DNA from: Takakia lepidozioides
Lineage: Eukaryota > Plantae > Bryophyta
Assembly: GCA_030704615.1 (NCBI GenBank)
Contig: CM060734.1
Location: 13,268,001-13,332,000, forward strand
Length of the DNA stretch: 64,000 nucleotides
Reading direction: 5' to 3'
Part shown: positions 15,851 through 61,569 of the stretch, in pieces
How positions within the stretch are numbered: the first letter of the stretch is position 1
Layout of the letters: every line of letters begins with the position of its first letter
The notes under the pieces: generated by a model
The model's database searches: none
Told to the model about the DNA's origin: nothing
What the model saw: only the letters and a program-made list of their open reading frames with translations
Translations under genes and position numbers: made by a program

Positions 15851-16679
15851 GGGGGCGAGGTGGAGCCGCCCAGAGATGATGAGGTGGCCAGGCACAAGGT
15901 GCAGGCTAAGGACAAGCTCAACATGGCCAAGGACGTGGAGGTCAGGGTGTTGACCAAGGCATGGCCAACCGGCTTCAGCAGCTAGAGTAGAGGCTCGCTG
16001 CCATGGCTACAACTCAGGTGGTACCGGCTCCAAGGCCGGATGGTCCACCTCCGGCTCCTGAGGGAGGAGATATGGGAGGCATGGGATTCATGTGCGGGGT
16101 AGCACTACCACCAGTGCAAGTGGAGTCGGCGGCGGCAGTGACCCGAGGAGCAGCACGAGTTCCTGAGCCACGAGGTGCAGAGGTGGAGTTGGATCCACAG
16201 CGTGGGGAAGCAAGCCGTCAGGCGAGGCTTCCTCAATCATTCACATTGGCGGAGACAGTGTCGACGTCATCCATGGCACCTAGTTCTCGCCCGATTGTTA
16301 CCGAGGCGGAGGTTACTATGTCATTGGGGAGAGCTACATGGGCAACACCACTACCTAGTGTTGCCAAAGCTACGGCAGCTAGTGTCTGCTGGGAGCGGCC
16401 ACATCTTGTGTGCCAGGCTCCATTGTTCTCGGCTACCATAATTGCGACGCAGGGGGTAAGACCAGCTGAGGTGTTCAGGCTGGCAGCTACACTCTGTGAG
16501 AGTGGGGAGGTTACTTCATCTTCTGCGGAGATAGTGGGAGGTGTAGTGCCGGAGGGATCCTCGGATTTGAGGGTCAAGACTGCCACGGCGGCACCATGGC
16601 AAGTTGCAACTGTCAGGTTGATGGAGCTGTCAGCTAGGCCAGCCATTGAGCGCGCCATGGTGACACCTGGAGTTGTCAT

Positions 16680-17050
16680 GGTAGACAACCAGGATGACAT
16701 TTTCTGTTTGAGTGTACCAGCAGGCAAGAGGTACCGGCCACTACGGGTCTTGTTGGACTCGGGGCTCAGCCATTGATGTTGGGCAGAGCTGCTATTATAG
16801 GCTTGGCCTCACGGAGGCGGATATGGAGCCTTGTCATTTCTAGATACAGACGTCTCTGGGAGGATTGAGCAGGCTCGGGCATGACACGGCGTGAGTTGGC
16901 TATCAGACTACGGCCGGATCACCCTATAGATGACTCAGTAATGTGAGCCAAGGCCATTGTGACAGACGCGGTCTCATACGATGTCCTAGTTGGTGGGGCA
17001 GTGTGGTACCCCATGGGCTTCACCCTGGATTTTTGGGAGGAGTCAGCTTC
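16680..17050 (+). pseudogene. Aspartic protease domain (copy 1)
   Basis: RVLLDSG active-site motif at ~16744 and YDVLVG at ~16977. Confidence 0.7.
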
Positions 17051-17439
17051 CTATAGGCTGGATGGCAGTCAGGGAAGGCCAGCGTGTGTCAGCTCCTGTG
17101 ATGTTTCATAGGAGGAGTTGCGGTTGCCCAGCGGGGCAAGATGCCGACACTAGCAACATTCACAGCTGCAGTGACTTGGCCTGGATAGTTGCTAGAAGGG
17201 CAACACCATTCAGAGGATGACACACCTCCAGAGCATGATGACATGTATGGTTGGCGGAGTTGCCTGCCATGGTTGCTCAGACTCCAGTTGGGGCACGAGC
17301 AAGGATTTGCAGCACGGGTTGCTGATCGACGGGTGCAACAAGCCTGGGTGGAGGCTTTTGTACCCTCAGGAGAGGAGAGAGTGCGGGGATTGCACCAGGA
17401 CCACCTCAGTTGTCTCCATTGGACACCACACCTATTTTG

Positions 17440-18410
17440 TGGGCAGTATCCGGATGAAGGCTTTGCCTTCTGGACTTGTTTGGTGGGATCAGCCCGGATT
17501 GGCTGCTGTGCTACAGTAGGTGTACGAGTTCGATGTTACTTATGTGGCGAGGGATGAGATGTACGACGCGTCTCACTTCACCATGTTTGCCCAGTTAATA
17601 CACAGTACCCTGAGTTGTTGCCGGTGTGCTGCGTGATTTCGTGGATACCAGCAGACATTTCCTTGCTGGGGGCGCAAGATTTGGAGCGGGTTGGCTCCAT
17701 CCACTTGGTATGGCAGGTTGGCCTTGCCAAGGGCATTCATCACCGGGCATGGCAATGGATTGCGAGACTCGAGGTCGGGTCTGTTTTGGGAGATGGTGCG
17801 GGTTTTTGCGCCACTTACAGCTTCATCAGCTGTTCTCTCCGGCATACTCTTGCGAATGCCACTGAGGGCGATTCTCGGCCAGGGTGATGGCCAGTTGCAT
17901 CAAGTCCGGTCGTTGGCTTGGGTGAAGCAGTTGTTGGATGTGGAGTGTAGCTGCAGGGGGGTCACGGGCTCATCGTCCATGGCTATGTGGACTACCTTGA
18001 TGCAACCCGCACTGCTTAAGCATGCATTTGATGGGGTACAGCGGCGCACACACCTCAAGTGGATAACAGTTGGACACAGAGAGGCAGTCTCAGCGTGTGA
18101 GACACGATGACCGTTTGCCTTTGGCAGTGGTCAACAAGGTGGGTCAACCACAAACAACATTACCTACACTGCTCAGCTTCCTAGGATCGCATGCCTTTCC
18201 GGATAGTGGACCTAGCCTCCTGTGGGATGCTCAGTTGCAGCAGTTAGTGGAGCCTAATGCTGACGAGCGTGAGCGGGCAATGGGTTTTACCATTGGTACC
18301 ACAGCGGTGCCGTCTCTTTCTGAGGCATCACGTCGTCAGGTGTTAGGGCAAGCAATGGATCTCAATTGCTTGACCTGGATTATCAGCTTGGCTATGGCTG
18401 AGCAACGCAA
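17440..18410 (+). pseudogene. DNMT3-like C5 cytosine methyltransferase domain inside pol (copy 1, frameshifted)
   Basis: LLDLFGGI (motif I), GWPCQG (IV), GLRDSRSGLFWEM, a degenerate VI, ERERAMGF (IX) and RRQVLGQAM (X). Confidence 0.85.
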
Positions 18411-18859
18411 AGTGCGGAGTATACTTCCCTTGATGGTCTCTCTGCCTACCGAGACGGTACAGGCAGTGAGTGGGGGCAAGTAGGTGAGGACCACGGGGTG
18501 CAGGCATCCATGGCACACGTGGGAGGTGCTCGAGGTTCAGAGGGAGTTGGCAGCCAAGGCGGCGGTGATGGATGATGTTGGGGATTTTTTCTCGGTGAGG
18601 AAGTCCTCAAGGATGAGATGATGGGGCAGGATGATGCCTCCTTGATGATCAGCAGGGAGTACTACTCAAGAGGTTGCAACATAGCAACCACTGGACGCAT
18701 CCTCTACCTCTCAGCCCACTGGACTTAAGGTTGTAGTTACAGAGGACAATTGGGAGCCTGACATTGGACCCATTGTCACCGATGATAGAGAGACGTAACA
18801 GTGGTTTCCTGAGGGCTTACAGGAATTGCTTTGCCTTCAGTTTGAAGGACTTGGAGCAG

Positions 18860-20170
18860 TAAGTGTCAAGAGATCTGTTTGAGTTGGCCACTTACACGCC
18901 AATCTTTCGGAGACCCTATAGATACAGTGACATGGAGAGGTCTTTGATTCAGATGAGGACTCAGATCTCTGGGAGGCAGGTTTGGTGGAGCTCTCTTGGT
19001 GGAGAGTATGCTTCAGCCACAATGATGCCAGCTAAAAGGATGTCTATGGCAATTGGACGGAGACGTATGTGTGGTGATTACCGGCCTGTAAATCGTCAGA
19101 CTAAGTCCGATAAGTATGCCATGCCTACACTGGAGGAGATCTTTGATGCCATTGGGCATGCTAAGGTCTTTAACACTTTTGATTTACGATCCGAATATCA
19201 CCAGTTGTCGATCAAGGAGGCGGACAAGCGAAGGACGACATTCTGGGGGATCAATGAGCACGACAAGGATTGCCTATAGCAGTGGCGAGTCTTACCATTT
19301 GGCTTAAGAACGCTCCTGCAGAGTTTCATAGGAGTCATGGATAGGATTCTAGCATGGTGGACTTTGCTCGGTGCTACATAGATGACATCATCATCTTTAG
19401 TGCTACGGTGGAGGAGCATGAGAGACAAATCTTCAGGTGGATTGGAGCGCTTGAGAGCGCATGGATTGAAGTTGCATCCGGGGAAGTGTAATTTTTTCCA
19501 CACCAGATTGAGTATCTGGGTCACATGATATATCCTGGAGGATTGGGGGTACAACAGACTAAGGTAGAGGCTATTGCACAAATTCCACGCCCCCCGGATG
19601 TGAGCCGAGTTCGAGCTTTCATGGGGTTAGCAAACTACTATAGACGGTTTGTCAAGGGATTTAGTGCTATCGCAAAGGCTCTAACCAAGCTGACAAGGTG
19701 GACCAGGAGTGGCAGTGGGAAGATGAGCAGGAACAAGCTTTTCCAAGAGCTCAGGCGAGGTTTCCTCGGCTCCTATCCTGAGACGACCTATCAGGGGGCA
19801 TCCCTTTCAGCTGCATACGGATTGGAGCATGCTGGGACTTGGAGCGGTGCTCACACAGGTGGATGATGATGGAAGAGAGTTCGTAGTGGCTTATGCTAGC
19901 CCGCTCGAACAACGCTGAAGAGGCTAAGTACAGCTTATATGAGGGAGAGTGCTTAGCTGTAGTGTTGGCCGTGGGCACACTTCAAGTGGTTATCTTATGA
20001 CAATCTTTTCAACCCTTGTCACGGATCACACACCACTCAATGGTTGATGGAGTCAGACAAGCTTACGGGGAAGCTTGCACGGTGGGCACTCATACTCTAG
20101 GAGTATGACTTTCAGGTTTGTGCATCGACCGGGTTTGGTCACGGGATGCGGATGGATTGAGTCGCATCCT
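18860..20170 (+). pseudogene. pol: Reverse transcriptase and RNase H (copy 1)
   Basis: RMCGDYRPVN, FDLRSEYHQ, YIDDIIIFS, RAFMGLANYYRRFV, LHTDWS and YEGECLAV. Confidence 0.9.
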
Positions 20171-20529
20171 GCACGAGCCAGCAGGATGACACTGAAGCTC
20201 AGTGGCATGTGAGACGGATGAGGAGATGGTGCCACATCGCATGTTGTTTGTGTATCTTGGCAGCGGGAGGTCAGATTGGACCTACAACAGGGATGACTAT
20301 AGACGTATTTTGAGGACCCTGAGGCTAGGATCGAGCCAGGTTGTGCCAGAGATATAATGAGGATTCGGCTGTGTTGGACTACCTCCGTACTGGAGACACG
20401 ACAACCACTGTGACTGCCAAGGAGAGGGATCCGATCCTGCAATGAGCAAGAGGTTCAAGTGGGAGGGGATACACCTACTCCGAGTGTAGGAGGATGGTCG
20501 GGTGAGGATTGTGCCTCACCCAATACAGC

Positions 20530-21735
20530 GTGCACGGCTAGTGCGGCATACCCATTAGGAGTTGGGGACATTTTGGAAGTGCGACGCACTCACAGTTTAC
20601 TGTCAGGGGGTAGTATTGGTGGCGTGGTATGCGTACAGAGGTGCAACAGTCGGTGGCTAGGTGCATAATGTGTGACAAGGTGCGTGCTTCAATCATGGGG
20701 GATTGGGCTACAGGTGGAGTCTTGACTTCGCAGGACCGTTGCCACTGACTAAATAACACCACCACAAATATGTGTTGGTGATGGTGAGCACTTCTCCAAG
20801 TGGATTGAGTTGGTTCCATTGCCTGACAAGGCTAGTGAGGGGGCTGCGTATGCATTCTTGGATCGTGTGCTTAGCCAATTCGGTGCTCCAGCTGAGGTAC
20901 TCACGGACTAAGGGAGAGAGTTCTTGGGGGAGTTTCAGGTTTTGTGTGATAAAGCCTTGATAGACCACCGCACCACTTCTCGGGATCATCCTGAGGCCGA
21001 TGGCTTGGCAGAGAGAGTTGTTCAGACGGTGAAGAGGGGTTTGCGCAAGTATGGCTTGCAGAAGGGACACCTAGGAGATTAGGATCTTCAGGTGCTTTGG
21101 TTAGCCATGGGCTACAGGTTCGCCAAGCAAGCATCACTTGCTTCCTTCTCACCATATTTCCTTCTCTTTGGCCAAGAGCCGGATTTGCATGCTGCCATTC
21201 GTAGGGACACTGCTTAAGTTCTTAACCTTGATGATCCGGACGTGTGGATACGTGCATGTGATCAGCGTGCAAAGTTGTTCAAGAAAGTCATGCCCATGGC
21301 TTTTGAGAACCTTGCCATTGCACAACACCGTGACACGTTGAGGTATGCCACTATACGTGGTGGAGGACATCGTCCTGGGGTTCGGAGGTTTAGCCCTGGT
21401 GACTATGTTTATTTGCAGCAGACTGCTCATACAACCCTGGATGTGATTGCAGGGCGTGTTATTCTGAGGGTTTGAGAGGTGTTGCCCTCACGAGTCCTGA
21501 TCCTAGAGGGTCGGGATGGCATAACTTGTGCGTAATTGTACGTCATGTCACCTTCCCAATGTCGATGGCAGTGGTACCTGAAGGTTTGAGGTGCATGCTC
21601 TGTGGGTCTGCCAAAGGGGCAGCCACCATGCTGGTGTGTGATCGATGCTTAGGAGGTTGGCACATGGGATGCTTGACACCACCTCTTGAGAAGGTTCCTG
21701 ATGGAGATTGGTTGTATCCACACTACTTGGAATAG
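20530..21735 (+). pseudogene. DDE integrase with C-terminal PHD finger (copy 1)
   Basis: WSLDFAGP, VLTD and ADGLAERVVQTVK. PHD CMLCGSAKGAATMLVCDRCLGGWHMGCLTPPLEKVPDGDW at ~21590-21730. Confidence 0.88.
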
Positions 21736-22959
21736 TGGCAGTGGACATGACTAGAGGCAGCTAACAAGACATGGGAGGCCAAGCTCATAGGAGTCAATAC
21801 ACGAGATCCCAGGCTCAAGTTCATAGGTTGCAAGACGGCGACTAACGATGGGGCAATTCTTGCACCCGACCTCTTGATCTATCGAGTTTGAGTGTAGTAG
21901 GGACAGTGGTGGAGGACTGAGGCTACAGTCACTATCACATCTTGTGGCTACCTGGACTTAGAGGGACCTAAGCACCAGCTAGGGGGGCGATTGTGTGGAC
22001 TAGTGACTGCCATAGTGGGCAGCATAGTGGCAGTCTAGTGGTTGGACTAGTGGTATACTAGTGTGTGGTATGCACATGTGTTGTGTGGTTTGGGACAGCG
22101 ATGTAGTTGTGTAGCGATATGTATGCGCACGATACATCTCTCCACTTATTGCAATCCCATCCAGGCACGGTGCACAAGGTTCTTGGTGACCACCTAGCCA
22201 ACACCACCCCTACCCCAGAACCCAGCACCACCATTGACAAATTTACCTTCCTCTCCCCAGACATACTCACTGCTACGCTAAAAGCCCTCACCCCTCTCCC
22301 GGGATTCTCCCCCCCACCCCCAAACCCATCACAGTTATCCACATCCCCTTTACCAGGCACAGCTCCATCTGCACGCCTCCACATCCCAAATATCTGCACT
22401 AGTTCCTTTACTATCACATCTTGGAACGTTGGCTACTTACTACTAGCATTCAGAGCCTCATCCATCTCCTAACAGACTTCACTCCCCCCCATATTATCAT
22501 GCTGCAAGAGACCAAATTGCACACACGTAACACTAATAGCTCTTACATCAATAAACTTCTCCCAGACTACTACCTATTATATGATAATCCCCTCACTGCC
22601 CCCACAATGTCTTCTTAGGAGATCAGCCCCGTACAAACCCACTAGGGGAGGCGTTGCCCTTGGCATCCTACGCTCCCACCACTCACCCAGCACCACCACA
22701 AAAATCACCTTGCCCATACATCTTAGGTCCCACCTCCAGATTGTCCACTTACACCCGTCAGCTCTCACTCCCATTTTACTAATTCACTTGTATATGCCCT
22801 CACACGATGAGGACCTGCCAATGATACCCGAACTCCTAAGCACCATATCCACTACTATTACCCACCTGACCACCAACAATACCATGTCATATTGGCAGGA
22901 GACTTCAACAGGGACATTGCACTTCTTGGCCATACCAACGAATATAATAGGTGAGAGGT

Positions 22960-44979: not shown

Positions 44980-45319
44980 TGTGCAAATTTTAAATTTTGC
45001 CACGTGGCGCAGCAAGAAGAGGCGCCGCCAAATAAATCAAAATAATAATAAATAAAATTAACAAAAATTAAAAAGAATGGAGTTTTAAATTGTGCCACAT
45101 GGCGCAGTGTGGCGCTCCGCAAAATTCTGCCACGTGGCTCAGCGCGGACAATCGCAGCCAGGAAATATATATATATATATATATTTAAAGAAATTAAAAA
45201 AAAACTATTTTTTATCGCTGGCGGCGCCCCGCGACTCCGCCACGTGGCTCAAAGCGGACAGGCGCGGCCCCAAAAGTTATCATTTATAAATTAATTATTT
45301 AAAAAACAAAAACAAAAAC

Positions 45320-47158
45320 CAAAACCAAAACGATTTTCTATCACTGGCACATGGCGGTTCCACGCGGCGGGACGCGGACAGGCACAGCCCACAAAAACAA
45401 TATAAATAAATAAATTTTAAAAAAAAACCAAAATAATTTTCTATCGCCGACGCATGGCGGCGCCGTCCGATCCCGCCAAGCTGCGAGATGTGGACAGGCC
45501 CCGCCCGAAAAAGGCCAAAAAAAATTAAAAAAATTAAAAAAACCCATGTGGCTCTGCCATGTGATTCTGCCACGTGGCGTGACGGGGACATGCGCCGCCA
45601 TATATACGAAGAAATCTTGGTTTGTGGATGGGACATTGCGTCCATAATGGTGCACACATGACATACCATTATGGTACTCCATAATTGTGTTTTCTCTAAA
45701 ATTAATAGTGGTCATTTTTTTTTGGTTCCTATGTAAGAGGGTCATCCCATATGCATGCTCATTTGCAACCGCCATGCAAACTTGGAGTGGAGAGCAAAAT
45801 GGAGTACTGGCGCGAACGTCAATAACAAGTGTGCTTTCAGGTTAGTGTTGGGGGTGTTGCGTACGCAACAACCTGTAATTTGCATTGTGGATTTTTATTG
45901 TTTTGTGTTATGTCATTATACGTTATTTCAATAAGGAGAATATAAAAAAGAAAGAAAGAGCATCGTCGAACATATGGGTGTAGCATGCGCAACACCCCTA
46001 GTAAAATTAAAAAATTAATAAGAGTATAAGAGTAGTTATAATTTATAATTTTAAAAAAAAAAAAAAAAACCAAAACGATTTTCTATGATTGGCACATGGC
46101 GGTTCCACGCGGCGGGACGCATACAGGTGCCGCCCGAAAAAGACAAAAACAAAACAAATAAACAAACAAACTGCGCCACATGGCGCGACGAGGACAGACG
46201 CCGCCATATATATGAAAAAATCTTGGTTTGTGGATGGGACGTTGGATGCGTCCATAATGGTGCACACATGACATATCATTATGGTGCGTCCATTATGGTG
46301 CTCCATAATTGTGTTTTTTCTATAATTTATAGTGGTCATTCTTTTTTGGTTCCTATATAAGAGGGTCACTCCATATGTATGCTCATTTGCAACCGCTGTC
46401 CAAACTTGGAGTGGAGAGCAAACTGGAGTACCGGCGCGAACGTCAACAATAAGTGTGCTTTCAGGTTAGTGTGGGGGTGTTGCGTACGCAACAGCCTGTA
46501 ATTTGCATTGTGGATTTTTGTTATTTTGTGTTATGTCGTTATACGTTATTGCAATAAGGAGAATATAAAAAAGAAAGAAAGAGCATCGTCGAACATATGG
46601 GTGTAGCATGCGCAACACCCCTAGTAAAATGAAAAATTAATAAGAGTATAAGAGTAGTTATAATTAATTAATTGTTATTATTTTAAAAAAAAACCCAAAA
46701 CGATTTTCTATCACTGGCACATGGCAGTTCCACGCGGCGAGGAGTGGCGCCGCCCGAAAAAGGTATTTTAAAAAATTATTATTAATATATTTATTTAAAA
46801 ATTATTTATTTAAAAAAAAAACATGTGGCTGCGCCACGTGATTCTGCCACGTGGCGAGACGGGGACAGGCGCCGCCATATATATGAAAAAATCTTGGTTT
46901 GTGGATGGGACGTTGGTTGCGTCCATTATGGTACACACATGACATAGCACTATGGTGCGTCCATTATGGTGCTCCATAATTGTGTTTTTTCTATAATTAA
47001 TAGTGGTCATTCTTTTTTGGTTCATATGTAATAGGGTCACTCCATATGTATGCTCATTTGCAACATCCGTCCAAACTTGGAGTGGAGAGCAAACTGGAGT
47101 ACTGGCATGAACGTCAACAACAAGTGTGTTTTTCATGTTAGTGTGGGGGTGTTGCGTA
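45320..47158 (+). repeat. Tandem array of three ~620-750 bp units; the third unit resumes at 60963-61110
   Basis: AAATCTTGGTTTGTGGATGGGAC at ~45612, 46218 and 46888. GTGTTGCGTACGCAACA at ~45854 and 46476, and split at 47158/60959. Confidence 0.9.
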
Positions 47159-47957
47159 TGTCGTGTACCTAAGCATCGTGCCACAACATACATCGTTGTC
47201 CACCACACAATCTAAGCACACAATCCTAGATTACCACAATGATAATGAAAGTGAACATAATTGAAACCCTCCACTCAAGAATCCACTCAATCACATAAAC
47301 TAAGTCAAGCCAAGGGCACCCTTGCTAAGGGAATCCACCCTACAAAGCCCCCACCACACTCTCTCTCTCAATACCTAGAGCTATGGAGGTGAGAGAGGCT
47401 CATGGAGGCTCAACTACAAGAAGATGAGCCTCCTCCATCCTCACAAGCGGAAAACCTATCCCATGTCCCAAGTGAGGCTGGACACCTCACTTGGCATGTG
47501 AGACCAAAGGAAGTCCCAACACACAAAATATAAATATAAATATATAAAATGTCTTAATTAACGAAAAGTAGGTAATTCTAGATAACCATGACTAAAACCA
47601 TGACAGCTGTCGTGCACCTAAGCATCGTGCCACAACATACATCGTTGTCCACCTCACAATATAAGCACACAATCCTAGAAAGTTATACCACAATCGCCCC
47701 CCTAGCTGGTGATTAGGTCCTTCTAACACCGGATAGCTGACAAGTATCCATCCCAATAAGATCATCGCGTGGTCATCAATCACCCCCAAGTCCCAGTATC
47801 TGAAGGCAATAGATCAAGAGGCCGGGTGCAAAAGTAGCCCTATCGTTACTCGCCTTCCTGCAATCCATGGCTTTAATTGGGTGTCCATGGCATTGAACTC
47901 CCGTTAGCTAGACCTTGGATCACTTGTCAACCTCACCACTGTCATGCCCCACTACCT

Positions 47958-48892
47958 CTATCCAAGGCATCATGGACACAACCATTCTCCACTATGAACC
48001 TCCTCAAGTGGCGGTGTCAAACATCCTATGTGTCACCCCCCTTGAGCATTTGTCACACACCAACATGGTCGCGGCACCACCAGCATGCCCACATAGCATG
48101 CAACGCAACCCTGCAGGTACCACTGCAAGGTTGGGATCTATCCTCCTATCCACATGTGGAAGGTGACATGACGCACAATTGCGTACATGGTCCTTCCATA
48201 CCATGCCATTTCGACCCTCCAGAATCAACACTCCTAAAGGCAACACCTCCCGGACCCTTAGAATCACACGACCTGCTGTGACATCCAAGGTCGTAGGCGT
48301 TGTCTGCTGCAGATACACATAGTCCCCAGGATGGAAACGCCGAACACCTCGCCGTTATCCCCCTCCACGTATAGTGACATACCTCAATGTGTCTCAGTGT
48401 TGGGCAATAGCAAGGTTCTCAAAAGCCATAGGCATGACTCTCTTGAACAACTCTGTCTGTTGGGCACCTGCTTGTGTCCACACATCATCAAGGTTGAGGA
48501 CTACTGTAGTCTCCCTGCGAATAGATGCAGGCAAATCTGGCTCTCGGCCAAAGAGAAGGAAATAAGGCGAGAACGAGGCAAGTGATGCTTGCTTGCTAAA
48601 CCTGTAGCCCATGACCAACCAAGGTAGCTGAAGGTCCCAATCTCCCAAGTGTCCCTTCTGCAAGCCATACTTGTGCAAGCCTCGCTTGACTATTTGTACA
48701 ACCCTCTCGGCCAAGCCATCAGCCTCGGGATGATCCCGAGAAGTAGTGCGGTGATCTATCAAGGCTTGCTCACACAAAGCCTGAAACTCCCCCAATAACT
48801 CTCTCCATTTGTCCGTGAGTACGTCGGCTGGAGTACCAAATTGGCTAAGCACTCGATCTAAGAATGCATACGCAGCCCCCTCACTTGCCTTG
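47958..48892 (-). pseudogene. Integrase core/C-terminus and PHD finger of copy 2 (N-terminal part at 55842-56170)
   Basis: HEELGHFG...CMVC...WSLDFAGP...LPDK joins ASEGAAYAFLDRV...VLTD...ADGLAERVVQ across the nested element. PHD begins CMLCGHAGGAATMLVCDKC. Confidence 0.88.
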
Positions 48893-51800
48893 TGTCGCGG
48901 CCCTTTGCCTTGAGGGCAGGGGGTCGGGACACATGAGGGCTGCCCCTGTGGTGGGGGGCAGCGGCAGCGATAGGTATGGGGGGCTGAAGCACCCTTGAGT
49001 GCCCAAGGCACTCAAGGAGGCGGAGGCGCTCACTAGGTGGAGCCCCGCACACCGGGTTGCGGTGGAGGTGGCTCCACAAGGGTGGTGGTTTAGTGGGACT
49101 TAGTGGGGTGGCATAGGACTCACCATGGGGGTGGAGACCTCGAGGTGGGAGTCGTGGGGAGTCTTGGGACTCATCACGGTCCATTGGGGCCGCGGTGAGT
49201 GGGCCAAGACTCACCGCGACTCACCACCGGGAGTCGAGGGTTTTCGTGGTGGTTCGCCATAAAATGGCATGGCTGGTTATGAAACCCCCGCGGACAGCTA
49301 CAGAAGTATATATAGGGAGTAGTAACCCCGAGAACGGTGCAAGCCCGTTGGTGACCAAAAACTAGTGAGAAGCGAGCGAGCGGAAAGCGACCAAAGAGTG
49401 GGGAGCTGTTCCGGACTGCCATCTACCAAAGGGAATTCTCCTAGTCCCAAATAGGTGGAGGGTTTAGAGGGAAGCGGAAGGGGACCGTTATGTCCCGGTG
49501 AGCAGCCGAAACTCCAAGTTGGCCCGGCGGCCAGGTTGGGAGTCAGGCGCGCGCATCAAAGCGAGTAACTATGACTTGAAGGGGAGTTTACCGAATGAGG
49601 TGTGCGACACTTGGTATCAGAGCTTAGAGTTCAGTACGCGATCGTCCTTGGGATTGGCCTCATCATGGGGTCGGGCAAGCCGAAGCGAAAGCGGAACGGC
49701 CCAAAAGATGATGACCCGGTGAGCCCGATGGGGGCGACGTGTCACCGAGGCGGCCGTTTGAGGAAGCGATTAATGTTTCCGAAAACGAGGCCGCTCAGGA
49801 GCGGGAGGAATCCGAGGAGTCGGAGCCCGAGGAATCTTGAGAGCTCCGACAAACCAAGAGATGCCTCCCATGCCGGCAGCCTTTTGGGAAGGGTTGTTGG
49901 CGCAGTTTGGCGGGACGTTGAAAGACGTGTTGAAGGCGGCTAATGCCACTTCCACCAAGGCAAAGTTTAAGGTGAAGCCTAAGGAACCCGGCACCTTCGA
50001 GGGCGTTCGAAACCGGAAGGCACTCAACACCTGGCTCCTGGAGCTAGAGCAGTACTTCCGGGCGGCCAAGTTGAGTGACGAGGATCGGGTGGAAGTGGCT
50101 CCACCTATTTGAGGGGCTATGCTCAACAATGGTGGCAGAAACGCCTTCACGACCGAGGCCCAAGCCCGGAAACCTTGAACTGGAGTGGTTCAAGGAATTG
50201 ATGAAGAGACAGTTTGTGCCCCTCAACGCGTCCTGGCTTGCCCGGGACAAGATGAGGAATTTGAAGCAAACAGATGACATTCGGGGGTATGTCCAGGCTT
50301 TCAATGTGCTGTTGCTCGAAGTCGCGGACATGGCAGAACCAGAAATGGTCTTCAACTTTGTGGCGGGACTGGCCCCATGGGCTAGGCGGAAGTTGGAGGA
50401 GAAGCCACCCAAGACTTTGAACGAGGCAATTGAGAGAGCTGAATGTTTCTCGGATGTCCCTAGGGGTGAGAGACAAGGCCGTACGGAGCTGAACCACAAG
50501 AAGACCCGGCGGGAAGGTGACTCCTCCGACCGGAAAAGAAGTGGGATAGGCCACGCGGCGAAAATGGCACGTGGAAATCGAAGGGAGGCCTTCACACGTC
50601 AAAGGCGGCACCCGGTGCTTCGAAAGGAAAAGCGGGTGGAGCGCTTATGGCGGACAGAAGGCGACCTTTGATGGAGTGTGTTTCAATTGCGGGGAGCCCG
50701 GGCACATGGCCAAGAAGTGCACGAAGCCCCGGCAATTGAACATGACTCGGGCGACCACGGAGCTGTCGGAAGATACCATCAGTCGCTTGGTGGAAGCGGT
50801 GGTCGCCAGGACTTGCAAGGTAGGCAAATTTTCTTTGTGAGTTGTATCAGGAAACTGGCGCCTTACGAAAAGGGAGTCAGTTGTTCGTGGATGGGATAAT
50901 ATCCGGAACTAATGTGTCGTTGTTGGTGGACACAGGAGCGTCGCACTCCTTCATGACGCGGCGGCGCGAAAGTTGGGACTCCCGACAAGTGACGTGGGGG
51001 CCTCTATTGAGGTGCGCTCTGCCAAAGGAGAACCTCAGTTGGCGACAAGGTTGGCGTTTGATGTTCCTCTTCAACTGGGGAGTTGGGAGGGACGTGAGAA
51101 CTTCACTATCTGCGAGATCGATGGAGTGGATCTCATTTTGGGATGACCTTTTTGAGCAAATCCGGAGCGGTCATAGATGGCCGCAAGAGAGTAGTCACGC
51201 TGCCATGTGGGAATGGTGGCGAGGTTTTACGAGTGTCGGAAACGCCCAAATCCGTGGGAGGGCGAATAAACCTTCTATCAGCAAAGGAGTGGGCCGTGGA
51301 GGAGACACACGAGTCCCAGTTTTTGCTTTACATTAGAGAAGTGAAAGGAGAAGGCGATGGGGAGCCGAGCCCAGATTGGATCAAGGGGATTTTGGAGAAA
51401 TACCAGGATGTGATGCCGGAGGATTTACCAAGCGGCTTGCCACCGCGAAGAGGAGTTGACCACAAAATTGAGGTGATACCGGGATCGGAACCGCCTGCCA
51501 AGGCGCCCTACCGGTTGAGCCACAAAGAGTTGGTCGAGCTGAAGACTCAGCTCAAAGATCTAATGTCAAAGGGGTACATCCGGCCGAGTAAGTCACCTTA
51601 CGAGCCCCGGTGCTATTTGCAGACAAGAAGGATGGGACGCTGCGGATGTGTGTCGATTACAGGGCTCTGAATAAGGTGACTATCAAAAACCGGTACCCTT
51701 TGCCAAGGATCGACGACCTCTTCGATCGGTTGGCAGGAGCGAAGTATTTCAGCCGGATCGACTTGCGCTCCGGCTATCACCAAATTTCGGGTGGCGGAAG

Positions 51801-54800
51801 GAGATGAGGAGAAGACCGCGTGCAGGACAAGGTATGGTTCATATGAGTTCTTGGTGATGCCTTTTGGGCTCACCAATGCACCAGCGACATTTAGCACGCT
51901 GATGAACAGCCTTTTCCAGGAGTGGTTGGATGACTTTGTGATCGTGTACATCGACGACATCTTGGTGTACTCGAAAACAAAGGAGGAGCACCTGGAGCAC
52001 CTCAAAAGGGTGTTCCAAAAATTGCGAGAAGGGAAGCTGTATGCCAAAGCTTCAAAGTGCGAATTCGGGGTCACAAAAGTGGAGTTCTTGGGCATGTGAT
52101 TACACAGGATGGGATCAAAATGGATGACAGAAAGGTGAGGGCGATCTTGGACTGGGAGCCTCCGACTTCGGTCCCGGGAGTGCGATCCTTCCTAGGACTC
52201 GCCTCCTATTACCGGAAGTATGTGAGAAATTTCGCCAAGATCGCGGGGCCGCTGTCGGACCTTCTGTGTAAATCCAAAGTCTGGGTATGGAACACATTTT
52301 GTGGCCAAGCTTTTGCTGAATTGAAGCAGCGGATGACGGAAGCTCCAGTCTTAAAAATCCCGGAGTTCGATCGTCCGTTTGAGATTCATACAGATGCATC
52401 GGACTTCGCAATTGGGGGTGTACTTATGCAAGATGGACGTCCAGTGGCTTACGAAAGTAAGAAACTGAATGAAGTGGAGCGACGGTGGCCGACGCACGAA
52501 AAAGAGATGAAGGCGGTGGTACATTGCCTTGAACTCTGGCGCCACTATGTTGGTTCCAACCCAGTGAAGGTGTTCACGGACAATGTCACGTGAAAGTATT
52601 TTGCCACGCAGCCCAAGTTGTCCCCAAAACAACTTAGGTGGCAAGATACTTTGGCAGTGTTCGACGTGGATATCCAGTACAAACCGGGACGGGACAATGT
52701 GGTGGCCGATGCTTTAAGTAGAAAGCAGCAGCTCTTGTTGGTGTACAAGGGCGAGACGGCGCTCCAAAGGAAGATCCGGAAGGCTTGCCGGAAGGATGAG
52801 CTGGCAAAGTGCGTGATGCAGACTTGAGAATGGGGGTTAAATCGCAGTTCCACTTGCAAAACGGACTGCTCCGGTATAAGCAAAAACGTCTCTATGTGCC
52901 AAAGGGAGGGATCAGGGATAGTCTCTTGAGAGAATGCCATGATAGCCCGCTTGCGGGCCACGGTGGAGCCAAGCGCACTGCGGCACTCTTGAAGAAAGAG
53001 TATTTCTGGCCCAAACTGAGGGAGGAGGCAGAGGAGTATGTCAAGACATGCACCACATGCCAACAAAACCGGAGCGAGTATAAAAAGCAAGCGGGGCTGT
53101 TACAACCCTTGCCGATTCCAGAGGGGACTTGGGAAAGCGTCTCGATGGATTTCATGACTGCTATGCCGCTGTCAAAAGGATTCGATGCAATCATGGTGGT
53201 GGTAGATAGGTTCAGTAAAATGGCCCATTTCATCCCCACCAAGGAGACGGCAACGGCGCAGGAGACAGGGCGACTTTACTTCGCCCACGTCTTAAAGCAT
53301 CATGGAGTCCCGAAGGATATTGTCTCGGACCGCGATCCAAAGTTTACGAGTAAATTCTGGAGAGCACTTTGGAAGAAGATGGGGACGAGGCTGAAGATGA
53401 GCACCGCCTTCCGACCTACGACGGACGGCCAAACGGAAAGAGTGAATTCCGTAGTGAAGCAATTCTTGCGGAATTACGTGTCGGCAGACCAATCAGACTG
53501 GATGGAACACTTAGACGCGGCAGAGTTCTGTTATAATAACACAGAACACTCCGCGACGGGAGTTTCCCCTTTTGTGTTGGTCTATGGAAAAGCACCTCTG
53601 GTGCCGACAAGTTGGGCCGCCCAGGACGTTGAGGAACCGGCAGTAGCGGCGGTACTGGAAGAACGCGAGCGTTTGTTGAAGCTCGCAAAGTACAACATTG
53701 CCAAAGCTAGGAAACGGTATGAAAGGCAGGCGAATCGGAAGCGGAGGGAAGTGAAGTTTGAGGCAGGCACAGAGGTCTGGTTGAACATCAAGAATTTTCG
53801 ACTACCTCCGGAAATGAGTCCGAAGTTCGTACCTCCGTATGCGGGTCCCTTTCGCATTCGGAGGTTATGAATGAGGATGTGTATGAATTGGAGCTGCCAG
53901 CAAACAGCAAGGTGCACCCAGTATTCCATGTCTCCCTTTTGAAGCCTTACTTCAAAGATGAAGCACGTCCGAATCGGCAGCAAGTGTTGCGTCCGCCACC
54001 TATGCTGTTGGATCATGAAAATGAACCTCAATGAACCCGAGTACGAGGTGGAGGCAATACTTAAGTCGAGGAGGTTCAAGAACCGAGAAATGGAGTATCT
54101 CGTCAAATGGAAGGGCTATCATCTTGTGGAGGCATCTTGGGTGCGTGCCTCAGAAATGGGAAACGCATCCGAGGCAGTTGCAGCGTTCGAAGGGCGACCT
54201 CAAAAGCGGAAGAAGCGTTGATGGGGACATCAACCTTGGAGCGTGGGGGAGGAAATGCATGCTTAGCCCGGTTTAGCTAGCTCAGGAATCCGATTGCAAA
54301 AACTTGTATTGTACAAAAATTTGTGATAAAGGAAATGGGTTCCAAATATTGTGCGTCCTATTGTGTTTGGAATGGTGATGCATGGTGTGGTTGGCTGGTG
54401 TGTAGAATGCATGCTAGCTTACAAAGTGGGAGAGGTAAATTGGGTTAATCGTGTGTTTGCGCAGTGCCGAAATCGGGTGACTCCCATCCAAGGGGCAAGG
54501 AAACTTGCGCCTTATTTGGGAGTTCAAGTGCTAGTGCGCACCTGGCGCGTGCGCGTACTATAACTGCGCTACCGAGGGGGTTGCCTTGTAGTGCGGGCTA
54601 ACGCGGAAGCTACGTGCTTCCGTTCACGTACTATAATCGTGTAGCCTCGGGACGAAGTCGTAGTGCGGCTTCGGCGTGTTCCCGTACCTCAGGCCAGCAT
54701 TCCAAGGCGGACCCAATTGTAGTGATTGGGGCGCACGGTTGGTTCAAGGTTATCTTCCTAGTCAAAGAGGGTTTCAGGTGAACCCTTGCTCAAGGTGATG

Positions 54801-55841
54801 CCAAAAGCGGCATCATGAGCGATCGCAAGCAATGTTGTTGCAGTAAGGCGATTCGATCCTCGGGGAGGATCGTTCCTTGGCCTTGAAGTAGGCCAAGAAG
54901 AGTGCACTGGGAGGAGCTGGAGAGGCTCCACCCTTGGCCGGGACTTGGAGGAAGTCGGCCGAACTAGCTAGTGGAGAGTGGAGTCAAGTGTGGGGTTTGG
55001 TTCTTTGCCATGGGACGCCATGGTACGGAAACAAACTCCTTGATGTGGGACGCCACAACTTGGATGTTCGTTTCTACAAAATGGACAAGTCGATGAGGAC
55101 ATCGACTCCCTGTTGGTAGGGGTGTGTGTCGCGGCCCTTTGCCTTGAGGGCAGGGGGTCGGGACACATGAGGGGCTGCCCCTGTGGTGGGGCAGCGGCGG
55201 CGATAGGTATGGGGCTGAAGCACCCTTGAGTGCCCAAGGCACTCAAGGAGGCGGAGGCGCTCACTAGGTGGAGCCCCGCACACCGGGTTGCGGGGAGGTG
55301 GCTCCACAAGGGTGGTGGTAGCTTAGTGGGACTTAGTGGGGGTGGCATAGGACTCACCATGGGGTGGAGACCTCGAGGTGGGAGTCGTGGGGAGTCTTGG
55401 GACTCATCACGGTCCATTGGGGCCGCGGTGAGTGGGCCAAGACTCACCGCGACTCACCACCGGGAGTCGAGGGTTTCGTGGTGGTTCGCCATAAAATGGC
55501 ATGGCTGGTATGAAACCCCGCGGACAGCTACAGAAGTATATATAGGGAGTAGTAACCCCGAGAACGGTGCAAGCCCGTTGGTGACCAAAAACTAGTGAGT
55601 AAGCGAGCGAGCCGGAAAGCGACCAAAGAGTGGGGAGCTGTTCCGGACTGCCATCTACCAAAGGGAATTCTCCTAGTCCCAAATAGGTGGAGGGTTTAGA
55701 GGGAAGCGGAAGGGGACCGTTATGTCCCGGTGAGCAGCCGAAACTCCAAGTTGGCCCGGCGGCCAGGTTGGGAGTCAGGCGCGCGCATCAAAGCGAGTAA
55801 CTATGACTTGAAGGGAGTTTACCGAATCGAGGTGTGCGACA
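48893..55841 (+). mobile_element. Full-length chromovirus (Galadriel-like Ty3/gypsy) nested in the integrase of copy 2
   Basis: LTRs 48893-49609 and 55127-55841 (TGTCGC...GCGACA), TSD CCTTG, iMet PBS TGGTATCAGAGC at 49612-49623, PPT at ~55115-55124. Confidence 0.96.
49660..54221 (+). pseudogene. gag-pol: Chromovirus gag-pol (gag, CCHC, PR, RT, RH, INT, chromodomain), frameshifted as assembled
   Basis: [53 protein letters not shown] and chromodomain YEVEAIL...EYLVKWKGY...SW. Confidence 0.93.
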
Positions 55842-56867
55842 CCTTGTCAGGCAATGCCACCAGCTCAATCCATTTGGAGAAATGTTCCACCATCACCAAC
55901 ACATACTTGTTATGGCGAATCGTTAGTGGCAATGGGCCTGCGAAGTCAAGACTCCAACGATAGCCCAAACCCATAATGGGTAAAGGATGCAATTGTGGAG
56001 TAGGTGCATTGAAAGAAGCCCGCACTCTATCACACACCATGCACTTTGCCACTAACTGTTGCACATCCGTGTGCATGCTCCGCCACCAATACTGTCTTTG
56101 CAACAAACTATGAGTGCGCCGCACTCCAAAATGTCCCAACTCCTCATGGCCATGGCGTACCAATCACGCTCGTTGTGTTGGATGAGGCACAATCTTCACT
56201 CGTCCATCCTCCCGTACTCGGAGTAGGTGAGTCCCCTCCCACTTAAACCTCTTGGCTCGTTGTAGGATCCGATCTCTCTCCTTAGCAGTCACACTGGCTG
56301 CTGTCTCTCCAGAAGGTAGGCCAACACTGCTGCATCTTCATGTATATCCTTAGCACCACCAAGCTCCTCACTGATCTCTGGATCGTCATGCACACTATCT
56401 CTATAACCAATCACATGGGATGGACCAGCTTGAGCTCCCATTGCTAGAATGCACAAAAAGGCAGATGCGTGCCATCTTGATACCATCTCCTCGTCCGTCT
56501 CACCATGCCAACGAGCTCCTGTATCATCAAGCTCACTTGTGCATGGATTGCGACTCAATCCATCCGCATCCTGATTGACTATTCCGACTCGATGCACCAC
56601 CTAGAAGTCGTACTCTTGAAGCATAAGTGCCCACCGTGCAAGCTTCCATGTAAGCTTGTCTGACTCCATCAACCACTTCAATGATTGGTGATCCGTGACA
56701 AGGGTGAAGAGATTGTCATAGAGGTAGCATCATACTGCAGCTAGACACTCCCCTTCAGAGGAACTATACTTCGCCTCGGCATCATTGTTCGAGCGGCTAG
56801 CATATGGATGGAGCATAGCTCCAATCCCCAGCATACTCCAATCCATATGTAGCTGGCCCAAATGTAG

Positions 56868-57581
56868 ACGATCATCATATCGCACTCTCTGTGGTTGCCT
56901 CCCTTGGTCCAAAATGCCCTCAACCATGAGGTTGGGTGGCCGTTGAATGGAATCATAGGCTCTCTTGAGCAACTCTGGTGGTGCAAGATTGGTCCACCAT
57001 AACCTAGGCCTATGTGCCCGTGAACCCAATGCAGCTGCATCCAACAATACAGCTGGTCCAATCCATGACCGGATCTGATGCACACTGGCCATAACCCTGG
57101 CCCGAGAATCCCCCATGAGAGGAACATTCTCCAAGATATAGGCTAGAGGTTGCATTTGCCTCGTCTGCAAGTCACGCAACATTCTCAACATCTCCCAAAA
57201 CAAATGCGATCGTGCATCATGCAAACCATTACCATGACCTGCGGGAGAATATCCTTGGCAAGGCCACCCTCCTATCACCAAGTCAATGGGACCATGCCGA
57301 TCCAAATCCTCCGTCCCCAGTATGGTAATATCTGTTGGCAAGGTCTTTTGGTACCCTTGAATTGCTGAGAGAGGCAACAACTCAGGATACTGATGTGTGA
57401 GCAAGGCAACATGGCGCATGGAAACATGCCGAGCAATCTCATCGTTCTCCACATACAAGTACTTGCGTACTTTGATTCCTGTTTGCAACACTCCTGCAAG
57501 CCCAGTGCTCATGCCTCCAAACAGGTCTAGCAAACAAATGCCTGAGTCAGGTTGTTGCCAGATAATAGGCACTGTGTCCAA
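56868..57581 (-). CDS. DNMT3-like C5 methyltransferase domain, motifs I-VIII in one open frame (copy 2), truncated before motifs IX-X
   Basis: LLDLFGGMSTG, YVEND, DIT, DLVIGGWPCQG, RSHLFWEM, YILENV and AHRPRLWWTNL in ORF 56730-57581. Confidence 0.92.
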
Positions 57582-57719
57582 TGGAGCTAACTAAGGAGGT
57601 CCAGGTGATGTCACTGAACTCCCCTCACCTACCGATGGAAAGGTCTCCTGCCATGCTTGCTGCACACATTGGCTTGACACTTGCTGCAAATCCCCAACTG
57701 TACCCTACAGTGAGCTATG

Positions 57720-58058
57720 CACAGGAACATGAGGAAGCAATTCAGCCTTGTGCTGGTGTCGCCGCTGCCCTTGTGCCTCTAGTGATGGAGACATAGTTAG
57801 GTGACCAATACTCTCGCCGCTCCTCAATCTCCACCGCATGTCCCCGCCTAAATTCATGGTAATCATCCATGGGCTGCCCCTCAAGGTGCTGGAATAGCCC
57901 CTTCCACGCCATAAAGGGCGTAAACAGTTGTGGATTGCGCATTTGCTGCAAATCATAGCAACTATCAAGCTCCTGTATGAAATCATCAAGCTCGATGGTG
58001 CCCATAGCTTCAGAGTACCGACGTGGCCCCTTGGTAGCTCCATACATTTCTTCCATCG
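57720..58058 (-). pseudogene. gag: gag N-terminus of copy 2
   Basis: MEEMYGATKGPRRYS...ELDDFIQE, highly similar to copy 1 at 14751. Confidence 0.8.
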
Positions 58059-58659
58059 TATACCACAACAATGGCACGGAAATGGCTTGCACTCTCAGCG
58101 AGAATCCTCCTAACTCTGAGTCTGAACCTTCCTCAGAAGGCACTGAAGGTGAAGGTGGCCTAAACCGCACACCTCGTCTTGTATACCCACTAGTATCGCT
58201 GGTGCTCGTACCGGCACTCTCCTCAGCAACTGGTGGCACCTCCGTGATGAAAACTCACAACCACACCTGTTGTAAACCTGTATCTAATCCCCCTTTCCAC
58301 AAGGTAACCGGGTAGAGAACATGTTGCAGCTTATGGCTTAGGCTACTAGGTTCATAACATAAACCTGCACCTGCACCTGCATCCACCGCAATCACTCCTA
58401 TGGTCTGCTGGTCGTCAACCCAGCCTCACCATAAGAGAATAATGATGGTCTGACTGGTTATCACCCCAGCCTCACCACCGACAGCACGCTCTAGGATTGA
58501 CCGGTGATCAAATCCGGACCAACCTCCTATGAAAACAAACGCCCACACAAAACTAACATGGCGCACAGTCAAGCATGCACGTGTGTATGTGTAATGACTC
58601 CATATGCAACGTGCATGCCGAATTCGGGAGGGAAACAAAATTCATTGGACCGCTCCAAA

Positions 58660-59075
58660 CAGTACACCAAGGCCCCAAGAGCCTGCCAAATCTTGGCCCT
58701 CAAGGACCCCAAATAGTCCTTCAACAAGTCGCCAAAGACTCCTCAAGCTCGCCAAATATCGGCCTCCAAGGACCCCAAACAGCCCTCCAAACAGCCTTCC
58801 AAAGGCTCCAAAAACTTGCCAAATATTGGCCTTCAAAGACCCCAAATGGTCCTCCACATAGCCTTCCAAAGGCTCCAAAAACTTGCCAAAACTTGCCAAA
58901 ACTTGGCCTTCAAGGACCGCAAATAGTCCTCCAAACAATGATCCAAATACCTCTTCAAGAGCTCTTCAAAGCGCCTTACCAAAGTTCCTCAGAGTGTCTT
59001 CCAAAAGCTCCTCAAATGACCCCAAAGATCCCCCAAATAATTCTTCAAAAGGCCCTTGAAAATCCTCCAAAAGCC
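58660..59075 (+). repeat. Degenerate minisatellite (CCAAAGGCTCCAAAAACTTGCCAAA / CAAGGACCCCAAA) in the leader of copy 2
   Basis: Repeated blocks visible in the DNA and in ORF 58575-59138 (LGPQGPQIVLQ / LGLQGPQIVLQ). Confidence 0.8.
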
Positions 59076-61569
59076 CTATATTGTCTTTATATGTCACTAT
59101 GTTCCCAGCCTATAGTGACCGTTCCTACACCTTGGTGACCGTTCCCACACTTGGGTGACTGTTCCCATGAACCTAGGGTTTCATGTGCATCTCATGCTAG
59201 GGTTTGTGCATCCCATGCTAGGGTTTGTGCATTCCAAGCTAGGGTTTGGGCTTCCTTGCTTCATGCTTACTCTCCTCAAGCATCCATGACTTCTATGAGA
59301 TACCAAGGCAAACTACCTTGATCTTCTTCACCTCAAGCCACAACCAAGCTTGATTCCATCTCACCTAGCAATGCATTTGCCACACAACAAGCTTCACTTC
59401 TCTTTGGAGCTCAAGAATCAAGCTTTTTACCTCATTTGACAAGCAACCAAGTCTTGCACTCATTCATGTGGTCATCTTTGGCCATCCACATGCATGCTCC
59501 ATTCTTGGCTTCTATGTGTTGCTTCTCCAAACATCAATACATCTCCATCTCATGCAAAGAGGAAGATTCAAGTCCCTTCACTTGCTAGCTCAAGAGTCGT
59601 GCTCTCCTCAAGCTTAAGGCTGAAACCCCAACTCAAACATGTGCTCTACAAGTGCTTTTCCTTCACCTAAGTGGAAACCAGCCCTTTTCTTTCCTTCTTG
59701 CTCTCCATGCCTTGAAAATAGAAGCCTCAATGGGCTGAAAACATGCTCCATATAAGTATCACCTCATACACAAAGGAATGAACTTGTTCCCTTCACCTTC
59801 TAGCTCTCCTCAAGCTTGAAGTTGGAAGCCGCACTTGGAAAGCATGCTCCACACATGCGCCACTTGCTTGGTCAACCACTTGCTTCACCAAGAGCAATCC
59901 AAGAACTCAGAGAACTAGCAAAAGCACTCCCTTCTAGCGCCTTAGCTTGCTTTTTTGTCAACCAAATGAAACCCCACTTGGCTTCATTTCACCATGGATA
60001 AAACAACCACTTCTTAGCTTCTCTTGAGCTACTAAATGCTCCTCAAGCTATCCTTGTTGTACTCCTTCTATGGTGTTTCTAACCCAAGCATGTGCCGCTC
60101 TTTGGCTTCCCTTTCACACCATGAACAACTAGAGCTTGCTCTTGAAACCCTAGTGTCTATCTTCTCCACATGCAAGACGCTTCTCTTGTGATGCAAGAGC
60201 TCTTTTCCAAGCTCTCAAACCCTTGGTGCACAATAATGCTTCTACAAACCCTTAATGCATTCTTTTCACCATAGAAGTCACTTCCTTGGCAAATGGTTGT
60301 CACAACACTTGAGATACAAGAGATGGCGTTCCTTCTTCTCAAACTTTCAAACCTTTTGCTTCCACACACACAAGACTTTCTTCTACAGTACTTGCAAACT
60401 CTTGTAACTCAATAGCTCTCTCATTGAGCTCTCCACCTCCTTGATGCAATGCAAACACACTCTTCCTTGCAACACCTTGCAAGCCTTGTGAGATACCTGA
60501 GCTTTCCCTAGCTCTCTCACTCCTTGGTGTACACCAACACAAGTGTAAAACTATCCTTACACTCCGCACTCGCAAGCATAAGGTCATCTTCTTGTAGTGA
60601 TAATGAAAGTGAACATAATGGAAATCCTCCACTCATGAATCCACTCAATCACATAAACTAAGTCAAACCAAGGGCACCCTTGCTAAGGGAATCCACCCTA
60701 CAAAACCCCCACCACACTCCCTCTCAATACCTAGAGCTATGGAAGTGAGAGAGGCTCATGGAGGCTCAACTACAAGAAGATGAGCCTCCTCCATCCTCAT
60801 GGAAAACCTATCCCCATGTCCCAAGTGAGGCTCGACACCTCACTTGGCATGTGAGACCAAAGGAAGTCCCAACACACAAAATATAAATATAAATATCTAA
60901 AATGTCATAGTTAACTAGAAGTAGGTAATTCTAGATAACCATGACTAAAACCATGACACGTATACAACACCCTGCAGTTTGCATTGTGGATTTCTATTGT
61001 TTTGTGTTATGTCATTGTATGTTATTGCAATTAGGAGAATATAGAAAGGGAAGAAAGAGCATTGTCGATCATATGGGTGTAGCATGCGCAACACCCCTTA
61101 TCAAATGAAAAATTAATAATAATACATGTTGACTAAGAGGGTGTTGCGTACGCAACCACCTCTTTAGGGTTTAGGGTTTAAGATTTGGACATATTCATGA
61201 AATGTAAGATATTTCATCATGTTCATTAGGGTGTTGCGTACGCTACATTCTCATCTTCTCCTTGAAAATGAGAAAATAAGTTGATAGAAAGATATCGACG
61301 TCAAGGAATATAGGGGTGTTGCGTACGCTACCCCCTCATCTTCTACTTGTAGATAATATATGTAGAAGTGTTATTCGAAACATACCTTGAGCTATGTTGT
61401 CCATGAACTCCATGAGTTTGAGAGGTCGAACCGCTACAGTAATCCATGTGAAATGAACTCAAATTGGAGGTGTAAGCCTCTTATACTGGTGGAATGTAGG
61501 TAGGTTGGTAGGTACTATTTGATAGGTTTGTACTTTTTGATAGGTAGGTTGGTATTACTTGGTAGATTT

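Follow-up and report, generated by a model that had tools for sequence, protein, structure and literature searches.

Organization of the locus

We analyzed a 64,000-nt stretch of the Takakia lepidozioides genome (GenBank assembly GCA_030704615.1, contig CM060734.1, forward-strand positions 13,268,001 to 13,332,000), hereafter called the window. It contains two copies of one retrotransposon lineage, of which copy 2, on the minus strand of 47159-60958, is the main subject here. Copy 2 is a degenerate Ty3/gypsy retrotransposon of the streptophyte Gypsy-Dnmt3 lineage, and its terminal repeats are split into two direct-repeat segments, designated A and B. Read on the minus strand, a repeat search and BLAST resolved the order A1-internal-PPT-B1-GC-A2-B2, where PPT is the polypurine tract (Table 1). 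A1 and A2 are 94.3% identical over 367 alignment columns (E 1e-160), and B2 matches B1 at 95.8% identity over 72 nt (47159-47230 against 47608-47679; E 1e-27), a match that reaches the common start TTGTGG if one indel is allowed. The complete B-NN-A unit, NN being the 2-bp spacer, is present once, at the 3' side, and the termini of the element are an A on the left and a B on the right. Copy 2 does not have the same complete long terminal repeat (LTR) at both ends, with TG...CA beside the duplicated target, that defines a canonical LTR element. Its outer ends read TGTCATGG... and ...CACGACA, and the B1|A2 junction brings the same ends together as GACA-GC-TGTC.

The boundaries can be fixed because the insertion interrupts a tandem satellite of ~623 bp, in which 45419-46486 aligns with 46061-47158, and 46483-46643 with 60959-61119. 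The left-flank alignment stops at 47158 and the right-flank alignment starts at 60959. In the uninterrupted satellite unit the two overlap by 4 bp, at 46483-46486, and CGTA is therefore a genuine 4-bp target-site duplication (TSD). Uninterrupted units carry the palindromic target GTTGCGTACGCAAC. The insertion point itself is a 14-bp perfect palindrome, and the host satellite (45000-47158 and 60959-61350) consists of ~623-671-bp units with internal sub-repeats.

Both the layout and the single CGTA duplication had been proposed in a first-pass annotation made from the sequence alone; the repeat search and BLAST reproduce the former, and the empty-site satellite units the latter. The same annotation placed an extra T between A2 and B2, which needs correction. 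A T also stands between the PPT and B1, whose start is at 47693, so the T belongs to B and the A2|B2 join is exact.

Table 1. Positions of copy 2, its components, the element nested in it, and copy 1 (window coordinates)
Feature	Coordinates	Strand	Remarks
Copy 1	11527..22134	plus	A 11527-11853; PPT block 21973-21990; B 21991-22134
TSD, left copy	47155..47158		CGTA on plus strand; empty-site paralogs 46483-46486 and 45860-45863
B2, terminal B copy	47159..47239	minus	end ...CACGACA at 47159
A2	47240..47605	minus	start TGTCATGG at 47605; end ...CATTATCA at 47240
GC spacer, center of palindrome GACA-GC-TGTC	47606..47607	minus	proposed integrase cleavage site (abutted ends)
B1	47608..47693	minus	TTGTGG start directly after PPT
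PPT block CACCAGCTAGGGGGGCGA	47694..47711	minus	G-rich
3' internal region, including integrase core and C-terminus	47712..48890	minus	tblastn with P0157 and P0021
Integrase core and C-terminus	48891-48100	minus	tblastn with P0157 and P0021
Nested chromovirus	48891..55847	plus	LTRs ~720 bp, 97.4% identical; primer-binding site TGGTATCAGAGC, tRNA-Met type
Integrase N-terminus (HHCC zinc domain and start of rve core)	55848..56307 (tblastn match 56307-55822)	minus	PF17921 (Integrase_H2C2), E 3.7e-15; tblastn
RNase H remnant	56415..56852	minus	Pfam, tblastn
Dnmt3-type cytosine-5 DNA methyltransferase domain in pol	56823..57584	minus	PF00145, E 1.4e-14; PDB DNMT3A, E 1.7e-13
Predicted self-priming primer-binding site CTACAAGAAGATGA	60584..60597	minus	directly 3' of A1
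A1	60598..60958	minus	start TGTCATGG at 60958
Site in A1 complementary to the primer-binding site	60770..60783	minus	predicted transcript 5' end (start of R)
TSD, right copy	60959..60962		CGTA

Coding capacity of copy 2

Domains were mapped by a Pfam scan of 11 minus-strand open reading frames (ORFs) and by tblastn with two intact relatives, P0157 and P0021. The pol region of copy 2 encodes a Dnmt3-type methyltransferase domain, for which DNMT3A, 3C and 3B are the best PDB matches, followed by an RNase H remnant and an integrase with an HHCC zinc domain and a partial Pfam match to the rve core. A Dnmt3-type domain is also found in the pol of copy 1 (17704-18450, plus strand). The reverse transcriptase (RT), expected between the methyltransferase and RNase H, is deleted compared with copy 1 (18124-19892), and the integrase is interrupted by a chromovirus, a separate and young element encoding gag, protease (PR), RT, RNase H, integrase (IN) and a chromodomain. 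No clean 5-bp TSD could be read at its edges (48891/55847). For one local BLAST, the two host segments beside the chromovirus were concatenated; they were otherwise unaltered. With its RT deleted and its integrase split by the chromovirus, copy 2 is dead.

The methyltransferase domain, the RT deletion and the nested chromovirus were absent from the first-pass annotation, which had described an element with an HHCC-DDE integrase and no tyrosine recombinase. The integrase matches bear this out, and no tyrosine recombinase (PF00589) was found among the 11 scanned minus-strand ORFs of copy 2. Nor is one present in the intact relative P0157, a single ORF encoding PR, the methyltransferase, RT, RNase H and HHCC-rve, with rve at the end. 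Among the relatives, two domain orders are seen: PR-DNMT-RT-RNH-IN and RT-RNH-DNMT-IN-PHD.

Relatives of copy 2 and their ends

Relatives were gathered through the methyltransferase ORF and their loci fetched. Nine copies could be scored, from the window, Sphagnum, Calypogeia, Closterium and environmental contigs, whereas L135 (Marchantia, masked by Ns), L006 (fragmentary) and L001 to L003 (too short) were left out as uninformative. The nearest named relatives of copy 2 are those of Calypogeia, Marchantia and Sphagnum, at 51-66% amino acid identity, with Closterium at 40%. In six of the nine copies, the 3' end reads PPT-B-NN-A-B; two are A-int-B, one retains the terminal B only, and none is BA-int-BA. 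The full order A-int-PPT-B-GC-A-B is complete in copy 2 (TSD TACG on the element strand) and in L136 from a Sphagnum troendelagicum chromosome (ATTC on both sides). PPT-B-GC-A-B followed by flank is found in L129, a peat-metagenome member of the L136 family, and in L004 from Closterium sp. NIES-53, the 5' half of which is masked by Ns; the environmental contig L008 has PPT-B-AC-A-B and flank. A second environmental contig, L005, has the A-int-BA-B order with an intact single ORF of 2352 amino acids and repeats that are 100% identical. The A-int-B form is represented by L007 of Calypogeia fissa (CAAG on both sides) and by copy 1 of the window (CATC on both sides), while L132/L133 keeps the last ~50 nt of the terminal B.

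Every scored A begins TGTCA, and every B ends GCACGACA, with CCCGACA in L005 and L004 and CGATA in the older copy 1. TSDs of 4 bp are present in four copies, namely copy 2, L136, L007 and copy 1. The TGTC...GACA ends with 4-bp TSDs that the first-pass annotation had predicted are thus found, the terminal GACA having become GATA in copy 1. The junction GACA-GC-TGTC is common to copy 2, L136, L129, L005 and L004, and the spacer is AC in L008. The first-pass annotation had also assigned the LTR the ends TG...ATCA. These are present in copy 2 but are not conserved: the ends defined by reverse transcription are TTGAGG.../...TCTTTTA in L008 and GAGGAATG.../...CTTACTT in L005. Since the start of B and the end of A do not keep TG...CA, whereas TGTCA and CGACA are conserved, the integrase signature lies at the A start and the B end. 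In copy 2, L136 and L005, A2|B2 is an exact join of the A end to the B start, as these are set by the primer-binding site (PBS) and the PPT, respectively. L004 fits the same exact join, its A1 being masked.

Of the non-coding parts of the element, the last ~45-46 nt of B, with two CGATGT-like motifs, are conserved best, and from this conservation they are likely an integrase-binding region. This conserved B end is seen in the window at 47159-47204, 47608-47653 and 22089-22134, and also in L136, L129, L008, L007 and L052. A pattern scan of metagenomes for it returned 120 loci, nearly all of them chance matches in unrelated contigs; the sole scan locus that looked like a B end was L052, to which no form could be assigned.

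The L005 locus (8592-19184) has a further layer. Here the insertion site of the young element is precisely the B|A palindrome of another, divergent copy, and an inverted partial A follows. The left junction, GACAGCTGTC|TGTCAGG, fits a 4-bp TSD TGTC, and the right junction lacks 3 bp (TGT). The resident copy has the order flank-A'-B-GC-A'. It may be an A-BA-int-B form, or a circle may have recombined with a resident palindrome.

The unit seen by reverse transcription

In every copy, B is immediately preceded by the PPT. Copy 1 has the same block as copy 2, CACCAGCTAGGGGGGCGA, and those of L008, L129 and L136 are near-identical to it. At the other end of the internal region, directly 3' of A1, a 14-nt PBS (60597-60584) is perfectly reverse-complementary to A positions 176-189; none of 500 shuffles gave such a match. 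The same complementarity between PBS and A covers 15 nt in the Calypogeia copy L007, 24 nt in L005 and 15 nt with one mismatch in the Sphagnum copy L136, and the paired sites covary between these lineages. In RNA folds of the predicted leader, the 5' end pairs with the PBS, with z scores of -4.0 (copy 2) and -6.5, and in L136 the PBS-complementary site has a TATAAAA ~25 nt upstream. These features fit self-priming of the Tf1 type, with a predicted transcription start in A; the Tcn1 elements of plants have likewise been predicted to prime in this way (PMC6317226). Self-priming was preferred to a tRNA primer, as no tRNA gene was found in the window and no TGG-type PBS after A.

A PPT conserved just before B and a covarying, putatively self-priming PBS just after A strengthen the case for B+A as the unit of reverse transcription, which is how the first-pass annotation had read the true LTR. 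The opposite assignment, with A+B as the LTR and a lost 5' B, was rejected, since there is no PPT before A2 and the PBS follows A rather than B. Given this predicted self-priming architecture, the repeated region R would start inside A, U3 would comprise B, NN and the first part of A, and R-U5 the remaining A. A2 would then hold the 3' R of the RNA, and the linear cDNA should read BA-internal-BA.

Proposed mechanism of insertion

We propose that copy 2 was inserted from DNA with joined LTRs, either a circle or a concatemer, that was cut at the palindrome inside the LTR, and we would put the probability of this reading at roughly 0.6. Plus-strand synthesis would start at the PPT, just before B, and minus-strand synthesis at the PBS just after A, with the RNA's own 5' end, mapping within A, serving as a Tf1-like primer. 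The integrase would ignore the ends of the linear DNA; its putative recognition ends, TGTCA... and ...CGACA, would be those that abut in each LTR as GACA-NN-TGTC. The cDNA ends would first be joined, giving a 2-LTR circle or a head-to-tail concatemer. Integrase would then make two CA-3' nicks, 2 bp apart on opposite strands of one palindrome. The molecule opened by these nicks would read A-PBS-internal-PPT-B-NN-A-B; its CA-OH ends would be recessed behind a 2-nt 5' overhang, like a 3'-processed retroviral end, and would be inserted with a 4-bp stagger.

A linear BA-int-BA molecule cannot give A-int-BA-B unless its ends are joined, and the A2|B2 joins are exact, so a 2-LTR circle is the simplest substrate, with a concatemer its equal. 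The first-pass annotation had argued for a 2-LTR circle opened inside one LTR. Its requirement for joined LTRs is supported, but not its restriction to a circle, because a head-to-tail concatemer fits as well. Only A-int-BA-B keeps the predicted start site in A1 together with a second R in A2, and hence only this form can make terminally redundant RNA, which would explain A-int-BA-B as the propagating form. A-int-B copies could come from 1-LTR circles, from double cutting or from later recombination between two B segments; as both such copies are old, they do not choose among the three routes. Whether insertion solely from joined-LTR DNA, opened at a palindrome with 2-bp spacing, holds for the whole clade, from streptophyte algae to mosses and liverworts, we regard as an even bet.

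Several points weigh against this proposal. All of the evidence comes from integrated copies, and of the nine copies scored, only four have both ends. Among the forms expected from the first-pass annotation, A-int-BA-B and A-int-B occur and BA-int-BA does not, but A-BA-int-B and solo A-B are unseen among the nine copies, although the resident copy in L005 is a possible example. The A-int-B copies are neutral, since later B x B recombination can account for them. Two-LTR junctions made by non-homologous end joining are often imprecise, unlike the junctions here, all of which are exact. Finally, the spacer is 2 bp here, as against 4 bp at the retroviral junction.

Alternative explanations

The alternative that survives best, although we consider it unlikely, is that linear BA-int-BA cDNA is cut at both internal palindromes to give A-int-B, with the extra A-B supplied by occasional concatemers, gene conversion or recombination. 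Cutting both palindromes of a linear DNA requires no circle, and two of the nine copies are A-int-B with clean 4-bp TSDs. However, both of these copies are old and degenerate, as fits a later B x B deletion, and an A-int-B element, lacking the 3' R, cannot give rise to terminally redundant RNA. L005, the youngest copy, with its identical repeats and intact ORF, is A-int-BA-B, and copy 2 and L136 show this form inserted as one unit.

It is quite improbable, in our estimate, that the reverse transcriptase builds a closed or single-stranded intermediate templated on the internal B-A, which is then inserted without a DDE integrase, as in DIRS/PAT-like elements. The repeat order is indeed the same as that of PAT/Ngaro/DIRS-type elements (PMC5890265), but the intact relative P0157 has no tyrosine recombinase, and 4-bp TSDs with TG...CA-type ends are signatures of a DDE integrase.

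LTR elements recombine often and tandem LTRs are known, so a conventional BA-int-BA insertion might have been rearranged later, through unequal recombination or through a deletion. The start of A1 and the end of B2 nevertheless coincide exactly with the TSD and with the paralogous empty site, and the same order and end sequences recur at six independent loci in several species, which makes such a history very improbable. Insertion of an unrelated element into the first LTR of a tandem pair, between its A and B, conceivable in a window rich in nested elements, or an assembly artefact, is hardly credible: the internal region lacks LTRs of its own, pairs with A through its first 14 nt and ends in the family-conserved PPT, no TSD lies at the A1|internal or internal|B1 boundary, and the recurrence of the order in independent assemblies and species, which answers the first-pass annotation's concern about the assembly, shows that it is not an artefact. 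On these grounds the nested-insertion model was rejected.

Copy 1 and other features of the window

Copy 1 belongs to the same lineage as copy 2, with 66-84% nucleotide identity, and has the form A-int-PPT-B without a second A-B. It starts with TGTCAAGG; its A-like region ends ...TTTATCA and is followed by a related leader. The identical PPT block, CACCAGCTAGGGGGGCGATTG, precedes a B-like region that ends ...GCACGATA, in which the terminal GACA has mutated to GATA. The CATC duplication, at 11523-11526 and 22135-22138, is a probable TSD. Pfam gave no matches for ten copy-1 ORFs because the copy is too frameshifted, and its domains were mapped by tblastn with the intact relatives. The flanks (11174-11526 and 22139-22700) are C/T-rich and run into an ORF like that of a long interspersed nuclear element, with an endonuclease-type ...SWNV... 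motif near 22430. By frame arithmetic, deleting copy 1 and one CATC leaves the flanking ORFs open and in frame.

Both copies have tandem arrays of 66-102-bp units in the leader and the region upstream of gag (58660-58960 in copy 2, 12488-13830 in copy 1). Elsewhere in the window, an inverted repeat of 760 bp with 94% identity pairs 1482-2242 with 9763-10510, a Gypsy RNase H fragment unrelated to copies 1 and 2 lies at 62982-63443 (plus strand), and GC skew is unusually strong (+0.52) at 26001-28000.

Significance

In the textbook view, the integrases of retroviruses and LTR retrotransposons act on both termini of a linear reverse transcript, and circles are dead ends. The integrated copies described here appear to record another rule, in which the integrase ends stand side by side within the LTR and the linear DNA is first closed or joined. 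If this holds for the whole clade, it would be a natural and obligatory form of integration from circles, a route that has long been a matter of debate in retroviruses, and a case of convergence with DIRS-type elements and with bacterial insertion-sequence circle junctions. It would also provide a natural system, in the culturable Marchantia, Sphagnum and Klebsormidium, for studying how integrase cleaves abutted ends. The system bears on how a DIRS-like repeat architecture might evolve without a tyrosine recombinase, and on whether the element's own Dnmt3 acts on episomal DNA. In practical terms, LTR-finding software will misannotate Gypsy-Dnmt3 elements, since they have no pair of matching terminal LTRs.

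Comparison with known systems

The closest of the known systems among bacterial elements are IS3, IS30 and IS911, in which the enzyme, a DDE relative of integrases, works on a circle whose ends abut 2-3 bp apart; these are DNA transposons copied out of the donor, and not reverse transcripts. PAT, Ngaro and DIRS elements, including TOC1, share with copy 2 the split direct repeats A1-internal-B1-A2-B2, which imply an intermediate with joined ends. They differ in having a tyrosine recombinase and no TSD, whereas copy 2 has an HHCC/DDE integrase, TGTCA...CGACA ends and a 4-bp TSD. With canonical Ty3/gypsy elements, the lineage shares a gag-pol with PR, RT, RNase H and IN, a PPT and TSDs of 4-5 bp. 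The B-NN-A unit also has the canonical placement of priming sites, with the PPT 5' of the 3' unit and the PBS after A. In canonical elements, however, the integrase ends are the LTR ends, while here they are inside the LTR and the integrated copy is circularly permuted. The PBS here would pair with RNA of the element itself and not with a tRNA, as in the Tf1/sushi and Tcn1 group (PMC6317226).

Retroviral integrases offer an enzymatic precedent. Those of prototype foamy virus and HIV-1 cleave the palindromic LTR-LTR junctions of 2-LTR circles, and a DDE integrase that cuts such abutted ends can regenerate integration-competent ends (PMC1180852, PMC1905944, PMC4372172). In the retroviral case, the palindrome is the LTR-LTR joint, has 4 central bp and serves a side route. 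Here, the palindrome lies within each LTR, has 2 central bp and is apparently the only route.

The first-pass annotation knew of no described equivalent, which was wrong. The legend to Fig. 4c of de Mendoza et al. 2018 (PMC5890265) describes KnitGypsy-Dnmt3 of Klebsormidium nitens as combining a DIRS repeat structure with Gypsy domains; that paper reports no TSD, end sequences, palindrome or PBS for it and proposes no mechanism. A passage in a 2026 preprint treats streptophyte 'Gypsy-DNMT3' as already described. Like that element, copy 2 has a Gypsy-type pol with a Dnmt3 domain, an HHCC and DDE integrase, and the repeat order A-coding-B-A-B. The host is different, the nearest named relatives of copy 2 being from bryophytes, and the K. 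nitens element was compared by its description. In the open-access literature, we found no paper on the TSDs, end sequences, palindrome, PBS or mechanism of Gypsy-Dnmt3 elements. The repeat order is thus already known from an alga; what is new is the mechanistic reading, the breadth of the clade, the PBS complementarity and the GACA-NN-TGTC junction.

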